In this document: positions 217 to 48,153 of the stretch, piece by piece
How positions within the stretch are numbered: the first letter of the stretch is position 1
Layout: each line of letters opens with the position of its first letter
Source of the DNA: Macrostomum hystrix
Taxonomy: Eukaryota > Animalia > Platyhelminthes
NCBI GenBank assembly: GCA_950097015.1
Contig: CATNEN010000038.1
Coordinates: forward strand, 8,742,001 to 8,806,000
DNA: 64,000 nt
Direction of reading: 5' to 3'
Notes under the pieces: model-generated
Databases searched by the model: none
What the model saw: the letters and a program-made list of their open reading frames with translations, nothing else
What the model was told of the DNA's origin: nothing
Translations under genes and position numbers: made by a program

Positions 217-3029
217 CACGAGCATTTAGGAATGGATGCTGCAGAAGCTGCACAGCAGTCTTTCTCTCGCATCTATGCTTAGCTGTGCAACTGGCGTAGA
301 AATCCTTCAAGACATCGAGACAGTCATCTGGCAGCCTCGGCGCCCCCAGTTTGTTCACCCTCCGAACAATGGCCAGCATGTTCTTGCAGTCTCCGTGAGG
401 CCGGTTGCCCGTCAGCATCTGGTAGATCACGCAGCCGAAGGCCCAGATGTCGGAGGCGCAGCTGTAGGGAGTGTCCTCTGTCTCTTCCGACAGAAACAGC
501 TCCGGTGCCATGAACCAAGGGTCACCCTTTGGATTTCCCGTTATGTGGTCAGTAGCCGACTCAACCAGTTGGACGGCCAGTCCGAAGTCAATCAGCTTTA
601 CCACCCTGTCCTCAGACACCATGATTGTGCGGCAGTTGATGTCCCGATGAACAATGGCCCTTGGCTTCAGAGTGTGCAGGTACTGCATAGCACGGCAGAT
701 CTGCAATGCATAAGAAGCCCTGGTTTGTCTATGATGCCGCATATTTCTACGAGTTAGGATTACCGATCCAAGGAATTACCGATCCAATGAATTACCGATC
801 CAAGGAATTACCGATCCAATGAATTACCGATCTTAGGAATTACCGATCCAATGAATTACCGATTCAATTAATTACCGATCCAAGGAATTACCGATTCAAT
901 GAATTACCGATCCAAGGAATTACCGATCCAATGAATTACCGATCCAAGGAATTACCGATTCAATGAATTACCGATCCAAGGAATTACCGATCCAATGAAT
1001 TACCGATTCAATTAATTACCGATCCAAGGAATTACCGATTCAATGAATTACCGATCCAAGGAATTACCGATCCAATGAATTACCGATCCAAGGAATTACC
1101 GATTCAATGAATTACCGATCCAAGGAATTACCGATCCAATGAATTACCGATTCAATTAATTACCGATCCAAGGAATTACCGATCCAATGAATTACCGATT
1201 CAATTAATTACCGATCCAAGGAATTACCGATCCAATGAATTACCGATTCAATTAATTACCGATCCAAGGAATTACCGATTCAATGAATTACCGATTCAAT
1301 TAATTACCGATCCAAGGAATTACCGATTCAAGGAATTACCGATCCAAGGAATTACCGATTCAATGAATTACCGATCCAAGGAATTACCGATCCAATGAAT
1401 TACCGATCCAAGGAATTATCGATCCAATGAATTACCGATCTTAGGAATTACCGATCCAATGAATTACCGATTCAATTAATTACCGATCCAAGGAATTACC
1501 GATTCAATGAATTACCGATCCAAGGAATTACCGATCCAATGAATTACCGATCCAAGGAATTACCGATTCAATGAATTACCGATCCAAGGAATTACCGATC
1601 CAATGAATTACCGATTCAATTAATTACCGATCCAAGGAATTACCGATTCAATGAATTACCGATCCAAGGAATTACCGATCCAATGAATTACCGATCCAAG
1701 GAATTACCGATTCAATGAATTACCGATCCAAGGAATTACCGATCCAATGAATTACCGATCCAAGGAATTACCGATCCAAGGAATTACCGATCCAATGAAT
1801 TACCGATTCAATTAATTACCGATCCAAGGAATTACCGATCCAATGAATTACCGATTCAATTAATTACCGATCCAAGGAATTACCGATTCAATGAATTACC
1901 GATTCAATTAATTACCGATCCAAGGAATTACCGATTCAATGAATTACCGATCCAAGGAATTACCGATCCAATGAATTACCGATCCAAGGAATTACCGAGT
2001 CAATGAATTACCGATCCAAGGAATTACCGATCCAATGAATTACCGATCCAATGAATTACCGATCCAAGGAATTACCGATCCAAGGAATTACAGATCCAAT
2101 GAATTACCGATCCAAGGAATTACCGATCCAAGGAATTACCGATCCAAGGAATTACCGATCCAAGGAATTACCGATCTTAGGAATTACCGATCCAAGGAAT
2201 TACCGATCCAATGAATTACCGATCCAAGGAATTACCGATCCAAGGAATTACCGATCCAAGGAATTATCGATCCAAGGAATTATCGATCCAACGAATTATC
2301 GATCCAAGGAATTATCGATCCAAGGAATTATCGATCTAAGGAATTATCGATCCAAGGAATTATCGATCCAAGGAATTACCGATCCAAGGAATTACTCATC
2401 TTAGGAATTACCGATCCAAGGAATTATCGATCTTAGGAATTACCGATCCAAGGAATTACCGATCTTAGGAATTACCGATCCAAGGAATTATCGATCCAAG
2501 GAATTATCGATCTAAGGAATTATTGATCCAAAGTAATTACCGATGGACCGAATTACCGATAGAAGAATTTTCAATAGAAAAACTTGAGACACATATTTCT
2601 ATACACGTAATCAAAGTCTTTGCATGGTATTAATTCCTAAAATTGATTACCTGTCTAGCTAAATGGGAAATTATCCCATAATCCATTTTTTGTTTGTTGA
2701 TAAACTTTTCCAGAGTCTCGCCGTCAATCTGCTCCATGGAGACAACAACTGTCGTGTTGTACATTTCCATGTTTAAAAAGCGAACAATGTTCTCGTGCTT
2801 CAGCCGGCACAGCTGCTTCTCATTTTTGAAGGCCCGCTCTAGCTTTTCGAAAACGTCGGGTCTGCTCTCGCCCAGCTGAATGGGCAACCGGATGGTCTTG
2901 GTCACGCATCGCTCCTTGGTGCCTTTGATCAGAGCTTCGTGCACGTCGCTATGCGAACCTCTGGCTATCAGGCCTAGCTTCTCCCACGATTGATAATACT
3001 GATCGGAAAGCAAAGATTCTTCTTCTAGG
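217..3029 (-). CDS. Ser/Thr kinase domain (STE/MAP3K-like), two exons 3029-2651 and 700-217; gene incomplete at both ends; paralog of the kinase domains at 34.5-37.7 kb
   Basis: Motifs IARGSHSDV, CVTKTI, HENIVRF, HRDINCRT, DFG, FMAPE, SDIWAFGC. Junctions: HLARQ|gtaatc ... ttgcag|ICRAM (phase 0); phase-1 donor g|gtaggt after HPFLNAR; phase-2 acceptor tttcag before 3029. Shares CKNMLAIV with both other kinases. Confidence 0.85.
757..2560. repeat. 16-bp minisatellite (GGAATTACCGATCCAA)n filling the kinase intron
   Basis: Directly visible, with higher-order variant blocks. Confidence 0.97.
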
Positions 3030-22073: not shown

Positions 22074-23232
22074 ATGGTAAGTGAAGACAATAAATCGCTT
22101 GAATAAGTGTTGACCATCGACAGTTCCAATTCCGGAATGACTCCTAGACGAAATTTACCTATTCTTTCAGAACATTACAAAACCAACAGCCGCCACAGAA
22201 ATAAGCGGATACATTACATTCTACCGAGTTGTGTTTTCCTGGCTCTTCCCGCTGCTGATGGCGTTCGGCACCTGGGGAAATCTATCGTGCCTGATTGTCC
22301 TGCTCAGAAGGCCCAAGTGTTTCCCGTTCTCTGTGAGGCTTAGCATGCTCATTTGCTGTGTCGTGGACTTTCTGTTGGTTGGTGTGAAGTCGATAACGCA
22401 CTACCTGGCAACGGATGTCATGGGAGCCATCCTTAACGTCGATGACTACAGGAGAACTTCGGGTTTCGCCGTGTGCGTGATCTACTATCTGCTGACTCTA
22501 TGGCTGCTACACGGCAGTCCCTTCATCCGACTGGGTCTGTGCTTCCACTCACTGGCAGTCACCCTGGCTCCTCTCAGACATGCCAGTCTGCTAAGCAGGC
22601 GAAATGTGACGCTTTATCAGTTGGGTCTGCTTCTCCTCAGCTTTGTGCCGTGTGTTCGTGTAATCAGCTCATTCTGGTCCTCTAACTCGAAAACATGTCT
22701 ATTTCGCACTGACATGATTGAGGTTTTCTACCGGATTTTCACCGTATTCGTGTGCCGAATCGTTGTGGTCAGTTGTCTACTTGCTACTCTAGCGATCATA
22801 CTGTTTAGCGTGAGACGCAGTCGGAAAGAGCTGGGGAGTTCGGCGACGTCTGCCTCCAGTTCTCGCAGCGGTCCTCAGACTAAGACCGTCACCAGCATCT
22901 TCATATCGACCAGCATGATATTCTTTGTGTGTGAGATGCCGTACAGTGTGCTGAGGGCCCTGATCAATTTAGATTTGATCCCGGAGAGTGAATCGCTAGA
23001 CGAGCTCGTGGTCCTGCTAAATGGTGTGATGTATCTGAACCCGGCTCTGAACTGGTTGGCCTATCTGATTGGCAGGAAGTTTCGTCAACAGTACACTGAA
23101 CTGTACTGTTGCGGCATGTGCGAACTGGACTCTGCGCTGCTAAGCACTTCGAGGATTACTGAATTGTCTATGTCATCTGTCTCAAAAAAGTCAAGGGTTT
23201 CCAGAGTTGCTTCGACTAGCTTTGCAAGGTGA
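22074..23232 (+). CDS. GPCR copy B' (ATG exon 22074-22076 + exon 22171-23232)
   Basis: ATG|gtaagt ... tttcag|AAC ATT ACA gives MNIT; 7TM motifs. Confidence 0.9.
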
Positions 23233-27075: not shown

Positions 27076-28260
27076 ATGGTATGTGAAAGCCTGAAATTTA
27101 AGGTATTGATCTAAATTGCCATTTTTGAAGCCATAACTTAGAGTATCTATTTAAATAAGGCAATCTCAACACTTTATGGCGGTTAGTATGTAAATACAGA
27201 CCGCATGACCCATTGCAACTAACAATGTATCAAATTTTCTCTGTGGCAAGGAGCCCGATTGCTATTGATTACATCACATGTCACTGGCTTGTCACTGTTC
27301 TCCTTTCAGAATCACTCGACACTGAAAGCGACAGCCTCGAGAATCGCCGGCTTTGAGGAATTCTACCGGCTGGTGTTCTCCTGGTTGTTTCCTGCACTCA
27401 TGGCTTTCGGATCCTGGGGAAATTTCTCCTGCCTGCTGGTGCTGCTGAGACGACCAGAGTGCTTCCCGTACTCGGTCAGGCTCAGCATGCTCACCTGCTG
27501 CATCGTGGACTTCCTGCTCGTGGCAGTGAAGTCCATCACGCACTACCTATCGCCGGTCATCATGGGGACAATCCTGAAAGTTTTCGACTACAGGAGAGAC
27601 TCGAATTTCCCCGTGTGCATTGTCTACTATTTAATCACGTTCTGGCTGCTGCATGGAAGTCCGTTCATCCGACTGGGTCTGTGCTTCCACTCTCTAGTTG
27701 TGACGCTGGCCCCTCTAAAGCAGGCTAGGCTGCTCCGAGTGCGAAACGTGACACTCTACCAGCTCAGCTTACTCCTGCTCAGCTTCGTGCCCTGCATCAG
27801 GATTTTCAGCTCCTACTGGATTACAAAGAAGAACAGGTGCGACTTCTATGATGATTGGATTGAGGTATTCTACAGAATATTCACGGTGTTTGTTTGCAGA
27901 CTGGTTGTAGTCAGCTGCCTGCTGGTGACCCTGCTAGTCATACTGCTCACGGTGAGACGCACCAGGAAGTGTCTGGGTGACTCCGTCATATCGACCAGTC
28001 AATCTCAGCCCCAGACACGAACTGTGACCAGCATCTTCATCTCGACCAGCGCCATCTTCTTTGTGTGCGAGATGCCTTACAGTGTGCTGAGAGCTCTTGT
28101 GAACCTTGAACTCGTCAGGGACAACAGCGAGTTGGATGAAATCACCAGGCTGTTGAACGGTGTGATGTACATCAATCCCGCCTTGAACTGGCTGCCATAT
28201 CTGATTGGACGGAAATTCCGTCAGGAGTACCTCAAGATGTACTGCTGTGTGTGCTGCTGA
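27076..28260 (+). CDS. GPCR copy A' (ATG exon 27076-27078 + exon 27310-28260), C-tail truncated
   Basis: ATG|gtatgt ... tttcag|AAT CAC TCG gives MNHST; nearly identical to copy A. Confidence 0.88.
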
Positions 28261-30037: not shown

Positions 30038-30228
30038 GAGGTTGTAGCCTAGTGGTTAGGGCGTCGGACTCACGACTTGAAGATCGGGGGTTCGATTCCC
30101 GACTCCACTGGAACAATTTGCGTCCTTTAGCAAGACACTTAACTCTGCATTGCTTCAGTTCACCCAGCTGTTAAATGGGTACCAGCATCAGCTGGGATAA
30201 TTGAAGGTGGGTGTGACGTCCCCCCTAT
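30038..30228 (+). mobile_element. SINE family 1 copy (best-preserved tRNA head)
   Basis: tgtagcctagtggttagggcg...ggttcgattccc followed by the CORE-like block. Confidence 0.85.
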
Positions 30229-30284: not shown

Positions 30285-33200
30285 TCAGCGCTCTGCCGGA
30301 AACCTCATAAGCTTCCTGGTTGTCGCCCGGGAATTTGGGATCTGCAGGTTGCCACTTTCTCGCGCAATTTCTTCGACAACGCGCGGTAGCGCCGTCATTA
30401 AATCGTCGGTCTCTGTGTCAAAATTATTGATAATCATATTGGCCAGGGCGCTTATGAAGCTCTCAGAGTGACACAAGTTTCCCTTGACCACACTGCTGAT
30501 GTACAGGCAGTCCTCCTGGAAATCCCAAGACGCTGCTTGGACGCGTCCACCAACGGAGCGGTCTATTCGTCTCCCCCTGTCTGCTTGTGTAATGAAAATC
30601 TTCGGCTTGCCTCGCAGAGTCGGACAATTTCTGAAATTTGAGAACACTCTGTTCAGGGAGACCCGGGAGCCATCGCTGGAGTACACAAAGCCCTGCTCGC
30701 CATGCGAAAGTATGCAGAGGAGGAACGCGTCGTCTTGAGCGTAGTCCACAATTTCGCGATCACAAGTCAGGAGAGCATTAAACGATTCACTGTTCATGTT
30801 TCGGTGCAACTGGCATTCGAATCCCAATCGCTGAAAGCTCTGTGATAACGAGTCGATTACTGATCTTCTTGGCAGAAGACCACTATTCGCATTGAAGTCT
30901 ATTACGTCCACTATGATAGCTCTGCCGCGAGGCGATCGTTGCATTGGGTAGTACAGAGTAGCAGCGATGCCGAAGCGGCCGCCACCTCCACCGCCACCGC
31001 CACCTCCACCGCCACCGCCACCGCCACCGCCACCGCCACCGCCACCGCCACCGCCACCTCCACCCCCACCACGACCGCCACCGCCACTGCCACCGCGTCT
31101 GTCATCAGCTCCACCAGTGTCACCAATGTTGCCGCCATCATTATTGCTACCGCTGTGATCCGGATGGTTGCCGCAGCCGCTCTGTGTAGCTACTTCTAAC
31201 GGATCAACTCCGGTTTGTTCGGCTTTTGGGACCGTCCGAGTACTGAGTAGTTTAAAAGTAAAAAAACTCTTTTTTTGACGAATTTTATTGAATATCAATA
31301 CGAATTACAATGCCGAAAACTTACGAACGCTCGACGGCCTGTCGAGAAAATATTGCCCAATCAAGTGCTGTCATCCCTCGCTCTCCTTTGACATTCCAGT
31401 GCTCAGGGTCTTGAATAGCTTTGCGCAATTCCTGAATGACCAAAAGGTGGCCGCAGCGGGCGCCCCAGATTGCCGGGGTGTTACCAGAGAAGTCTGCCAG
31501 CGTTGGGTTGGCCCGCAGTCTGCACAGCTCTCGAACTGTATCAACATAGCCCAGTTTTGCGGCATAGGCGACTGCCGAAAACTTCATTGAGTCCTGCAAA
31601 TTGTTTTAGAGCTCGTATCATAACACACATTAAAATATCGCGACAAAAGGAGACGCAAAACGGTCTCGATAAAAAGAAGTTTCTGAAGCGGGTAATAAAG
31701 CTAACCTGGCTGTTGAGTTCGGCTCCCATCCTAACCAGCAGGTCAAGCACCCCAGTCTGCTGATTTTTCGCCGCCAAAATCAGAGGTGTCTGTCGTAGGT
31801 TGTCCGCTCTGTTAACTTCCACTTTCAGAACATCACTTTTGAGCCTTGCATGAAAGGCTTCGAGGACATCCTTGCGTCCATAATAGGCTGCCCAGCTGAC
31901 AGGCGTTCTTCCCATTGTGTCCTTCTTCGCGGTGCCAGACGGATCACGCTGAATGAGCTGGCTGACGAGGTCTTGCCTGCCCCTGGCAGCGGCTATCATA
32001 AGAAGAGTCTGATCCATGGGTCCGAACGTTTTTTGGTTGTTTTTGGAAGAAGCACACAATCTGGCCAGTTGCTGATCCGTCCACTGCCTCGGTGACTCAG
32101 GACTGAAAGTAATGTAGGAAGATATTTTGAAAAAACGGGGCCATATTATCAGCTTACCGCCGCTCAGAACGGATGGCAAGCAGAGCTTACGATGGACAGT
32201 ATTTTTTTATAGCGGCGACTTAACTATCCCAGTCAACTAGAAGTACATAGCCTAAGTGTTTATAAACTAACATCTAGACGCAAATTTAAGACTTTGATAG
32301 ATACGAGCGTATAGTAGCCCAAAAGGTTGTCAGAATACGCTACTATAGCATTTATAGCGGTCTACGAGTAGTTGGGACCACAGATTCAAAAAACACTTTT
32401 CTTAGAATCCCGCTTTTAGGATCTGTGGTTGGGACAGCGGGCTTTTAAATTGGACACTGAGCTTCCTACGGCGCCATACAGCGACTGCTGTCTATGGCCA
32501 ACTCAAAAATTCGGGCTTTGAAATAAGACACCGCGGGCAGACATTTAGAAATCTAAAAACTTCTGCATGGTTTAATCAAATGAGCTCTGCAAACAGGCTT
32601 GTAAAGTTCGCTGCCCAAAAAGTGTCACCACTAACTGTTATCGAGACATAGAATGGAGAATCTAACGTAAGCGAAAATAGCGCGAATAAAAAAGAGACAT
32701 CCTTATCCAAGCTCGGCAAAGAGGCGAGCCAGTGGGGCGACATTTCTTTAATGCTAGATATCAAGCGAACCTCCGTCTACAACATCTGTCACGCCTTTGA
32801 TTTGGAAGTGAGACACTCTGTACTGCCCAGGGGTGGAACTGAGAACCGAAAGCTCACCGAACCTATGAAAGAGTTTTTACTAGCTGCGGTTGAGCAGAAT
32901 CCGTTCGTCACGTTGCAACATCTGCGCACAACATGTTTTACACACATGTTGTGCTTGCACTGAATTGCAGTGAAATACATCAGCATTAGGACCTAAATAT
33001 CTGCCTTAGTGTCTACGCCTACGCCTGAGTGTCTAAATGTCTGCCCGCTGTCTAATTTCAAAGCCCGCATGTGTATTTTCGAGTTGGCCATAGACAGCAG
33101 TCACTGTACGAGTACCTTGTATAGGCAGCAGTAAGCTCAGTGTCTTTTCAGTGATTTTACCACCATCTTAAGCGTTAAAAATTTTGCCTGAACCAAAAAC

Positions 33201-35542
33201 GTGGATTAAGAACTCACACATCATCCGGTGAAGTTAGGAAAAACTTTTTGCTTAAAGTGGTCGCGGAAGTCACAGACAAGCCAAATTTCTCAGTTCCCTT
33301 GTTCAGCGCGGGCAGCTCTAGCCGCCTGTTCACCTCTGCCACGACGTTGTCGATGTGGTTCAGGCCGAACTCCTCCTCCTGCAGAGCCGCGCACAGAGCC
33401 TCGGCCAGTGACCCCCTGGGCCCCTCGGCAGCTCCGCTGCACAGCAGGAAGTCTTTCTCGGGAAGACGGAATGAAGACTCTTCTAGAGGGATGGAATTGA
33501 CACCTTCGGGGAGTTTGCTGGTCTGCAGGAAGAGCAACTTGGGCTTGTCCTTGAAGGTGCTGCACTGATTAGCTCGAAATCTCGCAACAATGTCCCTGAC
33601 TTCAATCTCGCATCCATCACTGGCGAAGATGCTTCCAACAGTTCCATATGCTAGTATGAAGCAGAAGAAACTATCACAAGGTGGCAAGTTGTCAGAGGCA
33701 GTAGTTTCTCTGATGCAGCTCCAGATTTCTACGTCGCTGAGATTTTCAAACAGCTGAGTATGAAAGCCGAGCTTTTTAAACGTGTGTATTATTTTTTGGG
33801 CTTCCTTCTTCTGTTTGGGTCGGTTAGGAAACATCGAATTGTCATGGTACGCATCAATGCTGATCACCAAACAGACGCCCTTCAGCTTGGCAGTCTTCGC
33901 ATACGTGTCGGTCTCGCGGGGTCTGAAATATTTTTAACACAAAGGCAAACTCTTCAACATGAAATGCACGGGAACGAGAGTCTAGCAAATAACAGCTGCA
34001 ACTCACTGTTCTTCCTGTCTCACACTAGTATGCGAGCTATCCATTTGCATCTGGTGCGTCGTTTCAAACGCCGGAACACTGAATCCTCCTTCCGTATTAA
34101 CTTGAGATGCAAAATAAATATTTATAAATATAATTAAATAATTTAAAAGTACAAAAAATCTTATGCTTTGTTCTTGGGATTTGTTGTTGTAAAAGTGCAG
34201 TAGAGCGTTTGCCTCTCGCACTTACGTTCCTCAGCTCGATTACGCCACGAGGCCACGTGGCGTAATCCAACCGCGGATAAGCTTTGGGGGCTTTGCGCTC
34301 ATGTACGCCCTAAGCAAGAGTGGTACACTGCCTGACAATATAGAGTTCATTACGAGCCTGCGTCAGTGTGCCTCAGTACAGTTTTTGTGCTCACTGTTCG
34401 TTTGGCTGCAATTGGCTTCTGTCACCAAGCGATAGGTACCAGTGCCCACAGCCCTGCTGCAAATATTAGATATTAATTTTGATAAGGATAGCTAAGTCCA
34501 TTGCGATTCACTCACATTCCTGAGGAAAGAACCGGTGCTTAATCAGTTCGGCGGCAGATATTCTATCAGTCTTCGCCTTTCTGGTGCAGCCAGAGTAGAA
34601 ATCCTTGAGCTCCGCGGAGCAGCTGTCAGGCAGTGGCGGTGCACCCTCCCTCTCCACCTTGCGAACAATGGCCAGCATGTTCTTGCACTCCCAGTAGGGC
34701 CTTTTACCAGTCACCATCTGGTAGACAATGCAGCCCAGGGCCCAGATGTCTGAAGCGCAGCTGTAGGGCGTGTCCTCCGAATCATCGTACAGGAACATCT
34801 CGGGCGGCATGAAGTGAGGATCGCCCCTGTCATCAGTGGACGGTTGCTCAGTCACCAACTCGAGAAGCTGAACGGCGATGCCGAAGTTGATCAGCACGAC
34901 GTGATCGCCAGGGCACACAATGGCGGTCTTGCAGTTCAGATTCCGGTGGAGCACTGGAGTCTCCAAGCCGTGCATGTAGGACAGGGCGCTGCAGACCTAA
35001 CCAAAAAGTTAAGAGCTAGTATTGATTTTAACACCGAATGTCGATACATCTGGCCCAACTCTAGAGGATTTAATTTCTAGCTATCACATCAATCCAAAAT
35101 TCAAAAACTCAAGCGTAATCAATTGAAAATGTCAAAGGGCAGGCGTTAAAAACGCACCAAATCAAGCAAGCTATGAGAAAAATTTGCTTACTTGTCTGGC
35201 CAGATGCTGCGTCTTTTCTTCTGGAAGGCCCTCGGGTTTGATGTATCTCTCCAATGCGACAGACTGAGCAGTGAGTAGGTTCATTGTTACTATCACAGTC
35301 GAGGTCGATCTGTCCACTTCAATGCTCAGAAATTTTACGACGTTCTTGTGGTCTAATCGGCACAGCCTGTCGCTCTCCTGACGGCATGCTTTCTCTAGCG
35401 CCGCCATTTTTCTTTCTGAGGCATCCTCAACAATTGAGCAGGGCAGGCGGATGCGCTTCACGGCCAGCTCACCCTGGCCGGCATGCGGCGCCTCGGCGTG
35501 CGTCTCGCCCCGGGAGCTCCTTGATAGCAGCTTGCGGACCAT
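30285..35542 (-). CDS. Pseudokinase - pseudocaspase - ankyrin repeats - poly-Gly - pseudocaspase protein, copy 1 (~1084 aa; true start may lie further 5')
   Basis: Exons 35542-35192, 34996-34516, 34100-34007, 33922-33218, 32102-31706, 31593-31325, 31242-30285. All GT-AG, intron phases 0,1,2,2,0,2, continuous open frame of 3255 nt. Motifs HRN/NFG/MPPE; FILAYG and KPKLLFLQTSK; GRTPVSWAA and QTPLILAA; ILSHG and KPKIFITQADRG. Confidence 0.85.
32479..33106 (+). mobile_element. Deleted Tc1-like element in an intron of copy 1
   Basis: TA|cagcgactgctgtctatggccaactc ... gagttggccatagacagcagtcactg|TA; internal HTH remnant (PRGG..RKLT..NPFVTLQ) related to the element at 8302. Confidence 0.85.
34195..34468 (+). 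mobile_element. tRNA-derived SINE family 2 copy (intronic)
   Basis: gcgtttgcctctcgca ... cagccctgctgcaa shared with 47055-47352 and 39212-39592. Confidence 0.65.
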
Positions 35543-36179
35543 TTCAGAAGTCTAATAGCACATGCTAGTCTACTAGAATGGCCTAGAAATTGTTGTTTCT
35601 CCGTCGTTTAAAAGTAGTCCTGGTTTTTACTAGCACTTTGACTCTAGCTCATGCACAACTTGTCTCTTTATAGCCTTGCCCTCCACAATAATATCCTTTC
35701 ATACCTCTGTCGTTGCTTATGCGCTCAATATAGTTCAGCTAGTGTGCATTGCTATGCTGTTGCAAAACAGAACATCTGCCGCATTGTGTGAACAGTGTAC
35801 AATGTCTGCTTAGTTACCAATTCTCTCTCCTTCTGCTTCTTTCTCTGTCTATCTCTCTGCAATCTGTCAGCAATACACATTAAGTCTGAATAGCAACGTT
35901 AAGCTTTGCCTAAGCATTATCAGCTCTGCCAGTCTAAACAGGTATTTTAGCGTTTAAGAAAGAATATCAATTATTGTCACTGTTTTAACTCCTTTCTGAA
36001 ACTGGGCACTTGTTTCTTTCGGTTAAAAAGTTTGCCTAAGATAAACTAGTAACAAGCCGTCATCGCTGAAATGGTTTAGCCGAGAGAAACGTAGCAGCTT
36101 TTTTCGCAGAATATTGAGTTAAAAAAGAAGTTTTCTTGCTGACAAGAACAACTGAATTATCGAATCGAATAATCTTGAC

Positions 36180-39100
36180 ATGAGGTAAGCTGCTTCTTCT
36201 GTTTTGTTTCAACCATGCATTACAAATAGGACTGCCAAACCACTTTGCGCAAAAACCAGTTAGTTGCCTCAGCGTTGTCTCATCCGGGCGCACCCCGCAA
36301 AGAGTTGATTCTGTCTGTGTACACATACCTTGCGACATCCTAAGGTGATGTATTAGTACGCACTCAACTGTAGAGCATCATTTTCAGTATCTTTATTTGC
36401 ACCGATCGATATTTGAGGTAAACAATAAACAAATATGCCAGAGGCAGTCGCCTGATATCCTCACGGCAGAGAAAACAAGACCTTTTTACATTCCAGCAGT
36501 CAGTCAGAATATGAAGTCGGCGAAGTGATTGGAACAGGCGAGTATGCAGAAGAGATCAGGGCTGTCTGGTTGAAGAACGCCAACAGCGACTTCCGCATGT
36601 GTGAGAAAATTCTCAAGCTGCCAATTCAGCCTGAGCAGCACCTGGATGACGAAACTCTGAACCAACTGGACAGACAGCGCAGCAAACTGGTTAACATAAA
36701 ACACGAGAATTTGATCAGGTTCGTTGACATCAAAATAAATAATAATGACATGGCTGTCACCGTGATCACGGAGCTGATTGAGGGCGGAAGTCTGTATTCT
36801 CGGATTAATAAGACTGCATTAGAGGAGAAAGCGATTCGAACTTTTTCCAAGCAGGTGAGCCTCTGAAACTGATTACTTTGAGTGCTGGCTCGATATAGCA
36901 CCTTACCTATTGTTCGAACTTGTTCGGACTTTAGCTTTCAAGCTATGGATTCCCATTTAGCAGCTTGTGTTTGCGAGATGATGCAATCCAGAGTTGTTCC
37001 AGAGCAGTTAAGAATCGAACCTCTGACCTTTAAGTCGTTAGTCTGACGCTGCTACAACTTAGTGCCTCTCCTCGACTCTAACTAAAGGTACTAAATACTT
37101 GAATATGTTAGAGCAACAAGCTACTTAGTGCAGAATTCATATAGAAGATCTTTATATTTATGGTACTTTTACAATGGCTATTCCAAAATCCGCTCCACAC
37201 AGATCTGCAGCGCTCTTTCCTACCTGCACAGATCGGACATAGCCATCATACACAGGAATATCAGCAGCAATACCATCATGATAACGAAGGAGGATTCCGT
37301 CAAGCTCATTGACTTTGGCATTTCCATCCAGCTGCTGGACGCAGTGAGCACTCAGCCGTCCCTCTGTCCCCGAGGCAACCCGCAGTACATGGCGCCCGAA
37401 ATGTTCCTGACTGAAGAGCAACCGGAGTGCTTGTACAGCCGCGGCTCCGACATCTGGGCTTTTGGCTGCGTTGTATTTGAAATGGCTACTGGAAGGAGAC
37501 CTCATTCCGATTGCAAGAACATGCTGGCTATTGTGAATGCTGTACAGAATTCTGGGGCTCCAAAACTGCCCGACTCGTGTTCTCAGCAACTCAGAGCGTT
37601 CTTCACAAGCTGCATGCACATGAATAGACGGCAGAGGGCTTCAGCGGCAGAGCTACTGCAGCACGCTTTTCTCCAACCAGGTTAGTAACGGCCAATAAGG
37701 ACACCTTTGTTAAACAGTTAGACTTGGCGATGATGGGCAAGACCTCATAGTTGCGGCTTTATTTTGCAGAGCGAACAAAACAGTCCGAACTACAGTTTGA
37801 CGGCAGTGTGATAAAGTAAGTACTTGTACCTCCAGTCGTTTTGTCATTTTTCTCGCTTAATTATAAAAATAATTCTATGCTCTTGTTATTTTTTGCCGCT
37901 TTTTGGTTCGAAGCATACACAATGACGAAATAGCAAACAAGTTTTCTGTCACTTGAATTCATCGACTGTAGTCTGGCATGCCCTGTCCTTATATACCAGA
38001 ATCTATAATCTTAGTACAACATATTTTTGAGCTTGGAGCCTGTAGTCAGAGCTTCTAAGTTCTGACTGAAAGGTCGAGAGTTCGAATCTCAACCCCGTGA
38101 AGAAATTTAGCTAGACAATTTACCTCGTAATTCACCATTGCCTCAATTCACTCATCTGTAAGATGGTTCTGTACTCTTCGTAAGAAATTTTCTGGAATCA
38201 GCTGAGGTAGAAATTATAAGGGTGGGTGTCACGGCATTCACCAGCAGTGTACCGACTGAACAGCTTGTACACAGTGCTTGAAGCGCCAGACGATAGCGGT
38301 GGCTGTACGCCTGGCCCAAGTGTGTCAGGTGTCATGACTCATTTCTGTTTAATTATCTGTATATATATTTTTAAGGGTCATATTTTTAACAACAGGAACC
38401 ACTTGTGCTTCAATCTATCGAGACTTATCGAAAAAAAATTGCTAAGTAGCATCGCAATCAATTTCAGAGGCGAGAAGCCCAAATACATGACAGCTGGACA
38501 GCCAGGACTGTGTCTGGTGATTGACCTGTATCCACCTGATTCGGACAGTCCGAATAAACAAATATTAGCGCGAGTCCGGAAAACTTTCGAATCTTTCGAT
38601 AGCACTGTAAAGGTTCTTGAAAGCGCTAAATGTCCCGATGTTTGGCGTACAGTGGAAATTTTAACAAGCAGCGAGGAGTTGGCCGATGCTGCCTACTTTG
38701 CTTGCGTCCTAGTCGCTCGAGGAGAAATCGGGCGCGTGTTGGCAAGCGATGACATGGAAATCGAGATCAGGGACCTCATAACCAGATTTCGTCCCAACCA
38801 GTGTCCAAGTCTAAAGAACAAGCCAAAGCTCTTCTTCATCGATGTGGAGACACCACCAGCAGCTACCAGATCAGACTGGAGCGAGTATCCCCTTCGCATC
38901 AGAGACGATGACTTCTTGGTTTGTGCCAACCACTCGCAAAAGCCTCTCTTCATTGAAAAACTGTGTGGCATTCTCACTGAAAATGACGAGTGTAGCGCTT
39001 CAGAAGTCGAGCAAGTTGTATCCGAAGTCAACAAACGCTTGTGCTTGGACCCTTTGAAGAAGGAGAAGAACTTTCAGTTGAAATCTTTTTCGGAGTCCAT

Positions 39101-41837
39101 TTCTACTTTGACGAAAATTTGTTATTTTAAACCGGAACCAACAACGCCGGATCTCAGGTAGACATTTTTAGAATTTCGGAGCTCAAATAGAATTAAAAAC
39201 GAATATTGTTACCTTAATAATAATAATAATTATAATAACTGCAGGATGGGTGTCATTTCTTGGGCTCAACATTTCTTGGTGACAATAGACCCACAGATTG
39301 CGGCGAGGAGCAAATTCTTCCCATTCTCGTCCCTCTCGAGCATAGACGAACATGGATACCGTACGAGGCACACACACACACAGGTGTGTACATCTGCCCT
39401 GACTTTCTCATCGCTAGGCAGTTTATATTTTCCCTGTACCTTGGAGATTGGCCCTCAAGGACGTAAATTGCATAACAACCCCCAATCCTTCTTTCTGCTG
39501 CTGCGCCCCAAATGAATTTGTGGGCTTGCTGGGAATAGAGCCCAGGACCTTGGTGCAAGAAGCAAACGCGTTAGACCGCTCTGCCACTCACCTCCACATT
39601 GTTACCTTGAGGGCGCGCTAACTAGTTTAAAAAAGCATTACATATCCGAACAGCTGATAATTTAAAACGAATGCAAGTTGACCTTTGCAAAAGCGTACCG
39701 CACTACTTACTAATTTTATGCAGATCGGAATCGCCAGAAAAGTGGGATGATGAGCACCTGAGGCTGCTCATTCAAGGGCAGTCGCGTCAGTGCGAGTCGC
39801 CGGATTTCACGTGTCCGAAGTACGGACCGCTGGAACAACCGTTGCTAACCATCGCTGTGGACAGAAACAATAACGAACTTGTTGACTCTCTACTGCAGCA
39901 AGCCTCCAAGGTGCCTTCGACTTACACGGGAAATGACGTGCTGGGCAGAACAGCCCTGTTCAGTGCCGCAATTAAAGGGCTCACAAGCATCCTAGAAGCA
40001 TTTGAGAATGCTTTCGCGAACCAGAAAGATCTCTTGAAGTGTGAATTGAACAGATGCGACAACTTGAGGCAGACTCCACTAATTTTGGCCGCTAGGAATC
40101 ACCAGAACAATGTTCTCGAGCAGCTTGTTCGAATGGGAGCTGACTTGGACTACCAGGTAGTAAAAATAGCAGAAATGAAGGAATGGCTGTAGAAGCATGT
40201 GCCAAAATATACCACATTTTCAAGTGAAAGTTTTGTCTTCTTTTTTTACGACGAACTTTTTTCGGGGCATTAAGTTGAAAGTAATTTATGCATGTTTGTC
40301 ATTTTCCAGGACATGACCAAGGCCTCTGCTATTGTTCATGCAGCTAGGCTAGGATATGACGACACTGTTGCCAAACTGTTGCAACTGGGCGCCAATCCAG
40401 TTCTACCGGACTTCTCATGCAATACTGCGCTCATCTGGGCCGCTCGCCGTGGATACACGTCAGTTATCGAGGCCCTGGCACCCAAGATTATCAGTGTTGA
40501 GCACTGGACACACAAAGGTCAGCGCAACTTGACGGCGCTCGAGTGGGCGAAGCTCTGCGGTCACGACAGCACGGCAGAGCGAATTCAGGAGCTGTAAGCA
40601 GAGCCTTGCATTTAGCTAGCAATGCACTGGAATTGGATCTAGTAAAGCACTTATAATTGAGCTTGAGCAATATTTTTATTGTCTAGATATACGACATAAG
40701 GTTTTGCGACAAAAGATCTGTACCTTTTATCTCCCTCCAGAGTATGTGTGTTTACTCTAGCTTCGAAATGATGAACGCTACGAGTCGTTTTTTTAACCAT
40801 TAAAAACTGATTATCAACGTTTACTTTTTTTCAGTATTCACAGACTTGCTGCGTCAGCTGGAGAGCCCGAAGTGGTTGACAGTTCTGCAGGCGGTGGCTC
40901 CGGGAGTGGTACGAGCGGTAGCGGTGGCGCTGTTGGCGCCGTTGGTGGTACCGGCGGCGAAGAGGGCAGCACTGACCAAGCCGGCGCTGGTAGTTGTAGC
41001 GGGAGCGGTGCTGGCGGCGGTGGCGGTGGCGGTGGCGGTGGCGGTGGAGGTGGCGGTGGCGGTGGCGGTGGCGGTGGAGGTGGCGGTGGCGGTGGCGGTG
41101 GAGACGGAAACGATGTAGGTGGAGCTGGTGCGCCGCCCGATCGCGGCCGCTATCCGATGAACAGTCAGAGCCGTGGATTTGCAGTTATTATCAGCAATAC
41201 ACAGTTCGCTCCACAATCTGGTCGCCAGCACAGACAATGGACAACTCATGACAATGAAAGACTGGTCCAATGCCTGCACAACATCGGGTTCGAGGATGCT
41301 CTCCTTCTACCAAACATTAGCAAAGAGCTCTTTGAAACACTTGGACAAACGGCCTCCAGCTGTTTGGGGTTCCAAAATGCCGACTCGCTATTGATTTGCA
41401 TCATTTCGCACGGCGAGCATGGCCGCGTGCTAGATTCAAGTGGCCGTCGTGTCGAGTTAGAAACTTTGTTCAGCCAGTTTAGGCAATCTCAGACAATGCG
41501 GCATAAGCCAAAGATCTTCGTGGTCGAAGCTGGGCGGGACATTCCGTTTGAGCGGCTGGTGACCAGACAAGCTGTCCAGCAGAATTCGGGACTGCACGAA
41601 GATTGTCTCTACATCTACAGCGTTGTAAAAGGATACAGTTTCTGTGAGGAAGTGAATCACGGCTGCTGCTTCATGCACTCATTTTTAGATGTGCTCGAAA
41701 ATGACTTCGACTTTGCCAACGAAGACTTGGTGTCCGTGCTGCCCAGGGTTGTTTGCTTGGTGTCCGATCGGTGCGGGGCCCGCCAAGTTGTCAGCCACAC
41801 CTCGACCTTTAAGAGGCAGCTGGTTTTCGGACTGTAA
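36180..41837 (+). CDS. Pseudokinase - pseudocaspase - ankyrin repeats - poly-Gly - pseudocaspase protein, copy 2 (~1098 aa)
   Basis: Exons 36180-36184 (tentative), 36497-36854, 37203-37680, 37770-37815, 38468-39157, 39724-40156, 40310-40593, 40835-41837. All GT-AG, phases 2,0,1,2,2,0,2, 3297 nt open. Motifs IGTG, HRN, DFG, YMAPE; VLVARG and KPKLFFIDVET; ~6 ankyrin repeats; IISHG and KPKIFVVEAGRD. Confidence 0.88.
38032..38335 (+). mobile_element. Diverged SINE family 1 copy (intronic)
   Basis: gagttcgaatctc, cattgcctcaattcactcatctgta, gactgaacagcttgtac. Confidence 0.6.
39212..39592 (-). mobile_element. SINE family 2 copy (intronic)
   Basis: Minus strand gtggcagagcggtctaacgcgtttg A box, gtcagggcagatgtacacacc, (ATT)n tail. 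Confidence 0.7.
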
Positions 41838-43374
41838 GTTGTATTGACAACAAGCAAAATAAAATGATTGCTACCAATCATACCTTAATTAAATGCCCAC
41901 TTGGCACTACCTTTATATTGTACCTGCACTGTACTCAAAGATCAGTCTGAAAACTGAGATCGAAACGGAAAATAACGAAATCACTGATTAAAGTTCTTAT
42001 TCAGGTGTAAAATTACCCTAAAAACGTGTGTGCAAGAGTGTACGTTTTTATAGCTGGGTTTGCCATATATTTTTTCTCGTGTGTTTGCTTTTCAGACTAA
42101 GACTGTCATTGTGTCAAATAAAACATTACGCTCGTATTCCTTTTGTTTTTAAAGATTTTTAGTTCTACCGTACTATGCACTAACTGCGCCATATGAAACG
42201 ACACTCTTATACTGTTGTGCCGTTTAAGTTTACCAATTAATGATATCGAAAATTCTATATTTTTAGCTCTACTATTTTTCCTCCTAATCCTCCATTTTGT
42301 TACGAGCAGAGTGCTTAATTATTGATTTGGTGTGTCTTTTTCAAATTTTGCTGACGCGAAAAGCAAAACAGTGGACTGTTTTTATTTTTCCATTGTAAGT
42401 GATGTTTTACTCTTAAATTTCTTTTTCATGGCCATTATTCTTTTAAATTTTACGAATCAACCAAGCGACAAAAACATAAAAAATTTTTGCTTTGTCAAAT
42501 TAGCAAGCAGCCATAATTACTATAGGCTTTTTTCATTAATTCGCTGACGAAGGTGCGCAATTTGGCATGTACTACTAATTGTGGCCAGTAGGGAGATACA
42601 GGCGATCGATAATTCAAGCGACGTCAGCTTTAAATTCGCGCAATTAATTGTTCCTATTTTTTGCAAGCGCGCCTAGAAGAAGGACGGGACACTTTGTCTT
42701 TGTTTCTTGGAAAATTTATTAAAGGCAGATTTTTACGGAAAATGCACTAACGACATATAGGAACTTTTCAAGCTTTTCATATTAAAATGTTGATAATTTT
42801 TTCTTGAAATTAAATCCAATGCTGTTCTTTAAACATAACTTGTAAAAACTGTTACTTCAATGTATTTTTAAAAGCTTCATTCTTGAATAGGCCTAATGGA
42901 TCTTCATTTTCTTTTTATTTATTTATTTTGAAGTACATTTAGCAACCAATTAATGCAGACACGTGCACAAAATTAGCCTCTAGCTTGGCACTACTGATTT
43001 GTAAACTAAAAAAATCTACATAATTCTCGCAATACGAGTACACATACTTTATTAGAAAGTGACTGTAAAATTTTGTTAGAAGTGACTTTACAGAGTATAG
43101 GGGAGAGCCGTGGAGAGCAGGATAGAGCAGAATGGAGCAGAATGCAGCTGACCTTTGCATAAGAGCGTGGGCGCACGCTATTGGCTGAGAGGAAAATCAT
43201 AATTTCGGGTTGCGCAAGGTGTTAGGATGCATGAATTGACATTTACATACAGTAGTGGTCTAAGAAATATACAGCCGAAGTGCAAAAGTTGTGAAGCGTA
43301 ATAATCAAAATACAACCTTCATCACACCCATAGTAAAGGGTAGACGTAAAGACTCTAACTCCTTCTTATGGCCA

Positions 43375-47200: not shown

Positions 47201-48153
47201 CAGTGAAGCGTACACTGCCTGGTTATAAAGTCAGGGCAGATGTACACACCTGTATGAGCCTGTGTAGTCAGGAGTCAGCGAAATGGGCTGGGCAGAATTG
47301 CCTAGGGTCACCAATTAATGTGCCATTGCCGCAGCCCTCCTGCAATTATTATTATCAATACGAACCGAAACTGTAATTACAGTATCCCTAACTGATTGCT
47401 CACGATATCAATACGAACCAAAACTGTAATTACAGTATCCCTAACTGATTGCTCACGATATCAATACGAACCAAAACTGTAATTACAGTATCCCTAACTG
47501 ATTGCTCACGATCACCACCCACCCGTTTTTCAGCCGAGACTCGCAAGCTGATGGTTCGCGCCTTCAAGCAGGCACTGCAGCAGTCGCAGATCCGTCAGCT
47601 GAACGAGGCCATCTCGCAGGATCCCAAGCTTATTAGCCTGAGCGGAATGTCTCCATCCCGCCTGCCGGAACTTGTCGAGCACAATCCTCTGGTAGCCATC
47701 GAGGTCCTACTCACCCTGATGAAGGCCAGCTCACCCCAGGTTACCGATTACTTCTCTGTGCTTGTGAACATGGAGATGTCCCTACACAGCATGGAAGTGG
47801 TAAACCGCCTCACTACCAGTGTGGAATTGCCTGCCGAGTTCATTCACCTGTACATCAGCAACTGCATCTCATCCTGCGAGGCCACCAAGGACAAGTACAT
47901 GCAGAACCGGCTTGTCCGCCTCGTCTGCGTCTTCCTGCAGTCCCTGATTCGCAACAAGATCATCGACGTCAAGAATATCTACATCGAGGTGCAGGCCTTC
48001 TGCATTGAGTTCAACCGCATCCGCGAAGCTGCCGGTCTGTTCCGCCTGCTCAAATCGCTTGAGTCCAGCGACGGCAGCGTCGACTCCGCCGCACTTGCCG
48101 GCGTTGGCGGAAGCAATCCGTCCAGCGCTGCCACCACACCGTCCAAGCCTTGA
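44206..48153 (+). CDS. CNOT11: CCR4-NOT transcription complex subunit 11
   Basis: Exons 44206-44243, 45751-45856, 45945-46220, 46630-47029, 47534-48153 are phase-compatible; [52 protein letters not shown]. Confidence 0.95.
46450..46605. repeat. Degenerate 17-bp tandem repeat (GATGTCAGGAGTCTGTA) in a CNOT11 intron
   Basis: Directly visible. Confidence 0.85.
47055..47352 (+). mobile_element. SINE family 2 copy in a CNOT11 intron
   Basis: ggtggcagaaccgttaacgcgtttg...gttcgattc head, gcagatgtacacacc, (ATT)n tail. Confidence 0.7.
47354..47512. repeat. 53-bp unit repeated three times just before the last CNOT11 acceptor
   Basis: Units start at 47354, 47407 and 47460. Confidence 0.95.

Follow-up and report, generated by a model that had tools for sequence, protein, structure and literature searches.

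Predicted pseudokinase-pseudocaspase-ankyrin-pseudocaspase proteins encoded by a divergent gene pair near a likely active caspase paralog in Macrostomum hystrix

Proteins that join a kinase-like fold, two caspase-like folds and ankyrin repeats in a single chain raise the question of whether they act as enzymes or in some other way. This question is posed by genes A (- strand) and B (+ strand) of the flatworm Macrostomum hystrix, a divergent pair arranged head to head within a stretch of 64,000 nucleotides (hereafter the window, C38:8742001-8806000 of the 220-Mb genome). To our knowledge, regulators of cell death that are pseudoenzymes, among them cFLIP and MLKL, have a central place in vertebrates and are hardly known elsewhere. 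The locus offers, in a genetically tractable, free-living and regenerating flatworm genus, three linked paralogs with one architecture and graded catalytic loss in three enzyme folds. The explanation proposed here, which is held with moderate confidence, is that A and B are triple pseudoenzymes acting as cFLIP-like regulators or decoys of an active paralog, gene C, in a Macrostomum-specific three-gene cluster.

All database and folding searches were performed exon by exon, the joined spliced proteins being used only for counts of length, phase and identity. The seven exons of the gene A model, predicted from homology and splice signals, encode 1,084 amino acids (aa), and gene B encodes 1,098 aa on translation, with 0 internal stops in either. 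The intron phases, counted after the exon of the kinase N lobe, are 0,1,2,2,0,2 in both genes, and the two proteins are 38% identical over their full length. Hence the divergent arrangement, identical domain order, identical phases and strong divergence proposed in an earlier reading of the window, made from the sequence alone, are confirmed. The start codons lie 638 bp apart, and the head-to-head arrangement suggests a co-regulation of the two genes by a single short, shared promoter.

The structure of gene B is supported by assembled contigs from three sequencing runs (X4, X5 and X6) of a single study, each of about 43 million letters, whose RNA nature is deduced from the intron-less contigs and the run sizes. 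In each run, one contig of 2.7 kb spans seven exon segments of gene B with 0 mismatches, every skip in the contigs is bounded by GT..AG, and the 46-nt linker exon is included. The canonical splice sites claimed by the sequence-only reading at 37680/37770, 37815/38468, 39157/39724 and 40593/40835 were found in all four cases as GT..AG with a pyrimidine tract, and the contigs also cross these junctions. A second gene B contig runs from 41115 to beyond 42000, as does the 3′ untranslated region (UTR), and the sole gap between the two contigs is the poly-Gly microsatellite, a sequence that the contig-mapping method skips. In addition, X4-X6 contain 55-57% of the sampled words of window 36300-42000, which is near its exon fraction. 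Upstream of 36495, the contigs carry 304 extra letters that end in GACATG and map to 36159-36182. The gene B start codon is located at the end of this extra 5′ exon, ATG(AG) at 36180-36184, which is absent from the exons listed by the earlier reading; the only upstream ATG opens an open reading frame (ORF) of 2 codons. Run X1 shows two non-synonymous and one synonymous single-nucleotide polymorphisms, too few to bear on selection.

For gene A, the 94-nt exon (34100-34007) has the best acceptor among the candidates and a GTGAGT donor. The model is collinear with PAA94593.1 (P0229) of M. lignano over residues 1-836, at 50% identity and including the linker exon, and VPAFET is common to both. The poly-Gly runs, whose length is read from the genome, comprise 31 residues in A and 30 in B and are coded by (GGCGGT)n.

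Exon by exon, the Pfam order is the same in A and B: Pkinase, Peptidase_C14, Ank, Ank and Peptidase_C14. The architecture of the family consists of a STE20/MAP3K19-like kinase-like domain, a linker mini-exon, a first caspase-like domain, about five ankyrin repeats, a Gly-rich tether and a second caspase-like domain. The presence of all these parts in one chain, as originally proposed, is borne out by Pfam for each exon and by the mRNA contigs of gene B. All four caspase-like domains of A and B score above the Pfam cut-off for the caspase fold (PF00656), and the ankyrin repeats directly precede the second of them on its N-terminal side (exons 5-7 of A, exons 6-8 of B). Pfam detected neither a DED nor a CARD nor a DD in the exons of A and B. 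The AlphaFold2 (AF2) model of A domain 2 has a predicted local distance difference test (pLDDT) value of 69.5 and a predicted template-modelling (TM) score of 0.73, its best Foldseek matches being caspase-8, caspase-7 and caspase-3 at TM 0.70-0.75; on this model, A domain 2 is predicted still to fold as a caspase.

Two short motifs recur in the family. The exon that opens the ankyrin block begins with SPxxW[STD]DxQL in all paralogs and orthologs (window 32102-32060 and 39724-39770). The linker mini-exons contain an Asp followed by a small residue, namely ELQFD-G in B (37770-37815), MQMD-S in A (34007-34100) and LSQD-A in C (L002 5034-5121, predicted), and in M. lignano the linkers read ELQFD-G in the A ortholog and SPQD-G in the C ortholog. 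At this motif, a caspase may cleave the kinase-like part from the remainder of the protein, and the motif, being short and loosely aligned, may also have arisen by chance.

Gene C, the third paralog, is located on the - strand, mostly to the left of the window and about 31 kb from A, and C, A and B all lie within 47 kb. In a search of the whole genome, the first caspase domain specific to the family was found in only three copies. A profile of these three domains, searched against 1.84 billion representative proteins, matched M. lignano proteins of 1,072-1,073 aa that contain Pkinase, Peptidase_C14, Ank and Peptidase_C14. Such members are present in UniProt and NCBI (e.g., A0A1I8GZ94 and PAA89054.1) under the names “hypothetical” or “Protein kinase domain-containing protein”. 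The closest public relatives are all M. lignano proteins, at 50-74% identity, and among the matches found the architecture occurs in Macrostomum proteins only, in agreement with the lineage specificity first proposed. The accompanying statement that no such protein was described proved too strong, as A0A1I8GZ94 and PAA89054.1 have the identical architecture and a kinase-like pro-domain had been reported (PMC11463336).

Pairwise identities and a tree of 109 domains indicate one-to-one orthology of A with P0153/P0229, of B with P0152/P0004 and of C with P0001, P0003 representing a fourth lineage. Because of this orthology, the A, B and C paralogs pre-date the split between M. hystrix and M. lignano. 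Identity to the M. lignano orthologs, which include A0A1I8GZ94, PAA89054.1, PAA94593.1 and A0A1I8GSV6, amounts to 50-59% for A and B and 58-74% for C. The M. lignano genes are also neighbours (PAA89053/PAA89054, and PAA94590/PAA94593 on one contig), and the same domain order is found in the three paralogs of M. hystrix and in at least three of M. lignano.

The catalytic residues of the kinase-like domain were read by alignment to MAP3K19 (HRDIKGNN, DFG). A reads HRNLNCKT and B reads HRNISSNT, the catalytic Asp and, five residues later, the Mg-binding Asn both being gone. The Asp of the DFG motif is kept in B and replaced in A (NFG). The same states are found in the M. lignano orthologs, HRN in that of B and HRN with NFG in that of A. 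C and P0001 keep HRD, C reading HRDINCRT together with DFG. The replacement of the Mg-binding Asn by Thr extends across the whole caspase-fused clade (pattern HR[DNQ]xxxxT), and both Asp and Asn are retained in the wider Macrostomum Ank-kinase family (HRDINCSN). The Lys of strand beta3 (VAIK) is aligned in A, B and C and is retained throughout the clade. By sequence, the kinase-like domains of A and B fit the criteria of pseudokinases.

The kinase-like domain belongs to the STE group, its best solved matches being TNIK (8e-25), MAP4K4, STK10, PAK and MST and its best named matches MAP3K19 (about 1e-28, 31-35% identity). RIPKs are absent from the 60 best solved matches listed. Homology of the RIPK type was therefore rejected in favour of a STE20/MAP3K19-like kinase. 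The kinase family is strongly expanded in the genome, with 86 matches at E<=1e-8, about 20 of these being 40-51% identical and located mostly in C1:22-26 Mb, and it is expanded in M. lignano too. Kinase exons of the same family are also found directly upstream of caspase exons at G000:C24:2966892-2969030 (- strand) and C1:23930103-23932617 (+ strand), two loci that are likely to be Ank-kinase-caspase genes like M. lignano P0023 and P0156.

For the caspase-like domains, the reference positions were validated by the alignment of C domain 2 with caspase-7 (SHG, QACRD and both Arg). In domain 1, the His and Cys positions are occupied by Tyr/Ser in A, Arg/Glu in B and Tyr/Cys in C, and by His/Glu, Cys/His or Ser/Ala in the M. 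lignano members. No family member has a His-Cys dyad in domain 1, and the loop that carries the second S1 Arg is always missing, which identifies domain 1 as a putative built-in pseudocaspase in every member. In domain 2, the positions are His/Asp in A (QADRG), His/Gly in B (EAGRD) and His/Cys in C. The second S1 Arg loop is deleted in domain 1 of A and B and in domain 2 of A; a Glu takes the place of this Arg in domain 2 of B, and the loop is present in domain 2 of C. The complete dyad and both S1 arginines, which give specificity for Asp, are found in domain 2 of C and of M. lignano P0001 and P0003. Hence, within the cluster, the active caspase is likely to be C, whereas A and B are predicted to be pseudokinase-pseudocaspase-ankyrin-pseudocaspase proteins. 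A reading of the pair as functional kinase-caspase enzymes is not supported, A and B lacking the catalytic Asp and the Mg-binding Asn of kinases and the Cys of both caspase domains. In place of the “signalling platform” suggested by the earlier reading, “pseudokinase-pseudocaspase scaffold” is the more fitting description.

The substitutions in the kinase-like domain and in domain 1 are common to A, B and their M. lignano orthologs, and for this reason these states are old and maintained. Together with the open frames of 3.3 kb and the correct splicing of B, the fact that the substitutions are common to orthologs of a diverged species argues for a maintained non-catalytic function and not for decay.

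Within one protein, the first and second caspase domains share only 16-22% identity and fall into separate, well-supported clades, hence a recent internal duplication was rejected as their source. All second domains form one clade with a value of 100 in the Shimodaira-Hasegawa-like approximate likelihood ratio test (SH-aLRT). The clade of first domains (SH-aLRT 98) includes the caspase of the M. lignano Ank-kinase-caspase P0156, and its sister group includes other Macrostomum caspases with odd pro-domains, namely P0023 (Ank-kinase), P0007 (LRAT), P0008 (Ras/Roc) and P0012 (Ank). The separate clades and the low identity fit a putative origin in which a kinase-caspase gene became joined to an ankyrin-caspase gene. 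A search for parasite ANK caspases with P0001 residues 560-1073 returned family members and generic ankyrin proteins only, and a search with the caspase-2 exon of gene C returned no match at 1e-10 within the length range, both results being silent on longer or shorter kin. The ESM Atlas, searched with C domain 2, gave generic caspase clusters only.

Among known proteins, the M. lignano family shares with A, B and C the domain order, the one-to-one orthology, the kinase and domain-1 substitutions and the clustering; it differs in belonging to another species at 50-74% identity, and its proteins are unnamed and uncharacterised. A study of flatworm caspases described an M. lignano caspase with a kinase-like pro-domain, which was placed sister to the ANK caspases (PMC11463336, Genome Biol Evol 2024). 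Only the kinase-like pro-domain was reported there, and the tandem pseudocaspase, the ankyrin block, the poly-Gly run and the catalytic loss are not mentioned. A limited literature search found no paper describing the five-part architecture or the pseudoenzyme state. The novelty lies in the catalytic state, the single-chain lineage-specific architecture having been deposited in databases before and mentioned briefly in one publication.

The same study reported that caspases that carry ankyrin pro-domains are specific to parasitic flatworms (PMC11463336). The proteins of the present family resemble these ANK caspases in having ankyrin repeats followed by a caspase domain in the C-terminal half, but differ by an extra half that comprises the kinase-like and pseudocaspase domains. 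M. lignano also has a predicted Ank-caspase (PAA56209.1, P0012), a predicted LRAT-caspase (PAA65113.1, P0007) and a predicted Ras/Roc-caspase (PAA63380.1, P0008). In the 109-domain tree, which includes no parasite ANK caspases, P0012 adjoins the clade of first domains and not that of second domains. The presence of ankyrin-linked and other odd pro-domain caspases in a free-living flatworm is thus contrary to the reported restriction (PMC11463336). The literature is corrected on both points, the M. lignano “kinase pro-domain caspase” being a family of five-part proteins and ankyrin-linked caspases being present in free-living flatworms.

Fusions of a kinase N-terminal to a caspase are found elsewhere, in the fish Alosa pseudoharengus (LOC143121611, XP_076138190.1, P0062; PYRIN-Pkinase-Peptidase_C14, i.e., PYD-kinase-caspase), in the snail Batillaria attramentaria (KAG5705283.1, P0064; kinase-caspase) and, as reported previously, in Eisenia andrei (PMC11463336). 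The Alosa and Batillaria proteins are both uncharacterised. In contrast to the Macrostomum family, the fusions of these three species have neither a second caspase domain nor an ankyrin block, and those of Alosa and Batillaria are independent events because their caspase domains fall into other clades of the tree. The best matches of the kinase-like domain are MAP3K19, TNIK/MAP4K4, PAK and the Macrostomum Ank-kinases, the Macrostomum paralogs sharing HRDINxxN. Compared with the STE-group kinases, both the catalytic Asp and the Mg-binding Asn are missing from A and B, as is the DFG Asp from A. The complex of RIPK1, caspase-8 and cFLIP, the kinase-ankyrin proteins RIPK4 and ANKK1, and MLKL provide an analogy only, in that (pseudo)kinases and (pseudo)caspases are combined in cell-death logic and RIPK4 joins a kinase to ankyrin repeats. 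Beyond the general folds, there is no homology with RIPK1, RIPK4, ANKK1 or MLKL.

The system formed by cFLIP(L), caspase-8 and caspase-10 provides the precedent for the proposed explanation. The heterodimer of FLIP(L) with caspase-8 (3H13) forms in preference to the homodimer and contains one active site only, and CFLAR adjoins CASP8 and CASP10 at 2q33.1 (PMC7586951). As with cFLIP, A and B are tandem paralogs that kept the fold, lost the catalytic Cys and lie beside a likely active caspase gene, and the best structural matches of A domain 2 include caspase-8. In contrast to cFLIP, A and B lack DEDs and carry a pseudokinase and ankyrin repeats in place of a death-fold pro-domain. In the Macrostomum family, furthermore, the caspase domain shares its chain with a built-in pseudocaspase.

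According to this explanation, C would be an active caspase of the initiator type. Its pseudocaspase domain would dimerise with the active domain of the same molecule, much as FLIP(L) pairs with caspase-8, and the Gly-rich tether would allow this domain to fold back onto the active one. The ankyrin and kinase-like parts of C would form a pro-domain for recruitment or sensing. A and B would neither phosphorylate nor cleave; as regulators or decoys derived from paralogs of C, they would set the threshold of its activation, either by engaging the partners of C through their ankyrin and kinase-like surfaces or by pairing with its caspase domain. A tandem cluster would thereby have arrived anew at the logic of CASP8, CASP10 and CFLAR. 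Should A and B regulate C, a circuit of an active caspase plus a dead paralog would have evolved more than once, here with a wholly different recruitment domain. It would also provide a handle on how caspases are triggered in flatworms, since no FADD was found in any platyhelminth (PMC11463336). In that study, DED caspases were found only in the two free-living triclads sampled. A bolder version, which is tentative and which we consider unlikely, holds that C, A and B constitute a self-contained flatworm-specific death module that arose when a kinase-caspase gene fused with an ankyrin-caspase gene, in which C, with its built-in pseudocaspase partner, activates executioners and the triple pseudoenzymes A and B tune C, convergent on caspase-8/cFLIP and RIPK/MLKL-like logic in a lineage reported to lack FADD.

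Other explanations of the locus have to be weighed against the proposed one. A joining of separate kinase, caspase and ankyrin genes by faulty annotation or assembly would agree with the fragmentary M. lignano models around the poly-Gly run and with the two kinase domains of P0152, but it is hardly credible, given that contigs of three runs cross every gene B junction with 0 mismatches and that the order recurs in three paralogs here and in at least three of M. lignano. Each of A and B could instead be an active kinase and caspase, forming by itself a platform for death or immune signalling whose kinase activates the caspases or is cleaved by them. All folds are present, the ORFs are intact and B is expressed, and this view may hold for C, which has HRD, DFG and the full domain-2 dyad. 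For A and B, however, it is made very improbable by HRN, the Thr in place of the Mg-binding Asn and the NFG of A, as well as by the absence of the Cys at QACxG from each of the four caspase-like domains (0/4) and the loss of the S1 Arg loop.

The multiple inactivating substitutions, and the slightly lower identity of A and B to their orthologs (50-59%) than of C to its own (58-74%), would also be expected if A and B were decaying redundant copies of C that drift towards pseudogenes. We regard this as improbable, since 1,084 and 1,098 codons are open across seven to eight exons with conserved phases, the A, B and C lineages pre-date the M. lignano split with orthologs that keep HRN/NFG, and B is transcribed and correctly spliced. 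An integrated decoy or sensor, whose dead domains are baits that pathogen effectors, C or other caspases bind or cleave so that the ankyrin part is released or exposed to signal, is a further candidate. The expansion of the kinase family in both genomes is typical of immune gene families, Macrostomum caspases are joined to many odd pro-domains (LRAT, Ras/Roc, Ank and kinase), and the D-[G/S/A] motif is found in the linkers of A, B, C and two M. lignano orthologs. This evidence is nevertheless purely circumstantial, the motif being short and poorly aligned, the neighbouring genes are not immune genes, and there is no known pathogen or effector; hence we hold such a role to be doubtful.

Several points weigh against the view that A and B are dead regulators of C. 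The regulation of C by A and B and their pairing with it are inferred from sequence and from the cFLIP precedent. Calls of dead kinases from motifs can fail, as WNK and CASK are active despite missing motifs, and B, which keeps the VAIK Lys and the DFG Asp, may bind nucleotides. The splicing of gene A is drawn from homology and splice signals only. In M. lignano, the gene models for the orthologs of A and B end or shift frame at the poly-Gly run, so that the loss of the domain-2 Cys may be either old or recent. The AF2 model of A domain 1, built on an alignment of three rows, has a pLDDT of 39 and is too poor for use. A complex prediction that paired domain 1 with domain 2 of A gave an interaction prediction score from aligned errors (ipSAE) of 0.41 versus 0.00 for the best control, with runs agreeing in at least 75% of contacts and a partner pLDDT of at least 72. 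However, at an ipSAE of <=0.60 only 5 of 78 solved complexes reached this mark, as did all four passing mismatches. The pairing is thus weakly supported, the pass may reflect memory of solved caspase dimers, and the score was not counted as evidence of binding.

Table 1. Coordinates of the features of genes A, B and C (window positions, except for those prefixed C38).
Feature	Position	Strand	Evidence
A exon 1: start ATG at 35542; kinase-like N lobe, VAIK-type Lys kept, Gly loop degenerate	35192..35542	-	Pkinase 1.6e-3
A exon 2: kinase-like C lobe, HRNLNCKT and NFG	34516..34996	-	Pkinase 9e-22
A exon 3: predicted 94-nt linker (phase 1 to 2)	34007..34100	-	splice candidates, collinearity with P0229, VPAFET
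A exon 4: caspase-like domain 1, with Tyr for His and Ser for Cys, no S1 Arg loop	33218..33922	-	Peptidase_C14 5e-22
A exon 5: SPxxWxDxQL motif and ankyrin repeats	31706..32102	-	Ank_2 2e-13
A exon 6: ankyrin repeats	31325..31593	-	Ank_2 2e-7
A exon 7: Gly-rich linker (31-Gly), caspase-like domain 2 (SHG, QADRG for QACRG, second S1 Arg loop deleted), stop	30285..31242	-	Peptidase_C14 8e-23
Gene A poly-Gly microsatellite (GGTGGC)n	30979..31096	-	Tandem Repeats Finder (TRF) period 6, 19.7 copies
Shared intergenic region, probably a bidirectional promoter; <=336 bp if the B 5′ exon is one block	35543..35878	.	inferred from 304 extra contig letters
B 5′ exon (approximate 5′ end), with 5′ UTR and start ATG 36180-36182	35879..36184	+	contig loose end
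B exon 2: kinase-like N lobe	36497..36854	+	Pkinase 4e-6, contigs
B exon 3: kinase-like C lobe, HRNISSNT and DFG	37203..37680	+	Pkinase 3e-30, TNIK alignment, contigs
B exon 4: 46-nt linker	37770..37815	+	contigs X4, X5, X6
B exon 5: caspase-like domain 1, with Arg for His and Glu for Cys	38468..39157	+	Peptidase_C14 6e-14, contigs
B exon 6: SPEKWDDEHL motif and ankyrin repeats	39724..40156	+	Ank_2 2e-14, contigs
B exon 7: ankyrin repeats	40310..40593	+	Ank_2 1e-8, contigs
B exon 8, coding: Gly-rich linker (30-Gly), caspase-like domain 2 (SHG, EAGRD for QACRG, S1 Arg to Glu), stop 41835-41837	40835..41837	+	Peptidase_C14 1e-18, contigs
Gene B poly-Gly microsatellite (GGCGGT)n	41005..41101	+	TRF period 6, 16.2 copies
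Gene B contig segments	36495-36854 / 37203-37680 / 37770-37815 / 38468-39157 / 39724-40156 / 40310-40593 / 40835-41004	+	contigs X4-X6
Gene C kinase-like C-lobe exon, HRDINCRT and DFG	227..724	-	74% identity with P0001 of M. lignano
Gene C kinase-like N-lobe exon	2642..3001	-	tblastn of P0001 on L002 8142-8501
Gene C, two caspase exons	C38:8740755-8741399, 8738399-8739037	-	genome search

Several further features accompany the three genes. Within the intron of gene B, the stretch 39356-39546 has a contig depth of 1,100-1,750 in X4-X6 versus about 45 for the B exons, with many loose ends, and is a highly repeated and/or highly transcribed element. At 30038-30107 (+ strand), 180 bp beyond the stop of gene A, a tRNA-like match scores 31.7 bits versus an Rfam cut-off of 29, and ARAGORN found no tRNA in 29-43 kb; this element probably represents a repeat or pseudogene derived from a tRNA. 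Immediately downstream of gene C, a minisatellite with the 16-nt unit TGTCTCATCTCTCCCG is repeated in 69 copies at 98% match (L002 1-1102 = C38:8736501-8737602).

Elsewhere in the window, an exon with a CNOT11 domain (PF10155, 7e-52) at 47449-48150 (+ strand) represents an ordinary housekeeping neighbour. At 56134-58005 (- strand), three frames are open at once (528-623 aa) in DNA with a GC content of 0.58 and a skew of +0.27, no Pfam match was obtained, and the stretch probably consists of repeats or low-complexity DNA. In the interval from gene C to gene A, four single-exon ORFs of 332-333 aa stand in tandem on the + strand (9835-10833, 16053-17054, 22231-23232 and 27259-28260), about 5-6 kb apart and 68-97% identical. 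One copy has a weak match to 7tm_1 (9.6e-5), and the ORFs contain an NPxxY-like motif, NPALNWLPY; on these sequence features they probably constitute a lineage-specific array of G-protein-coupled receptors.

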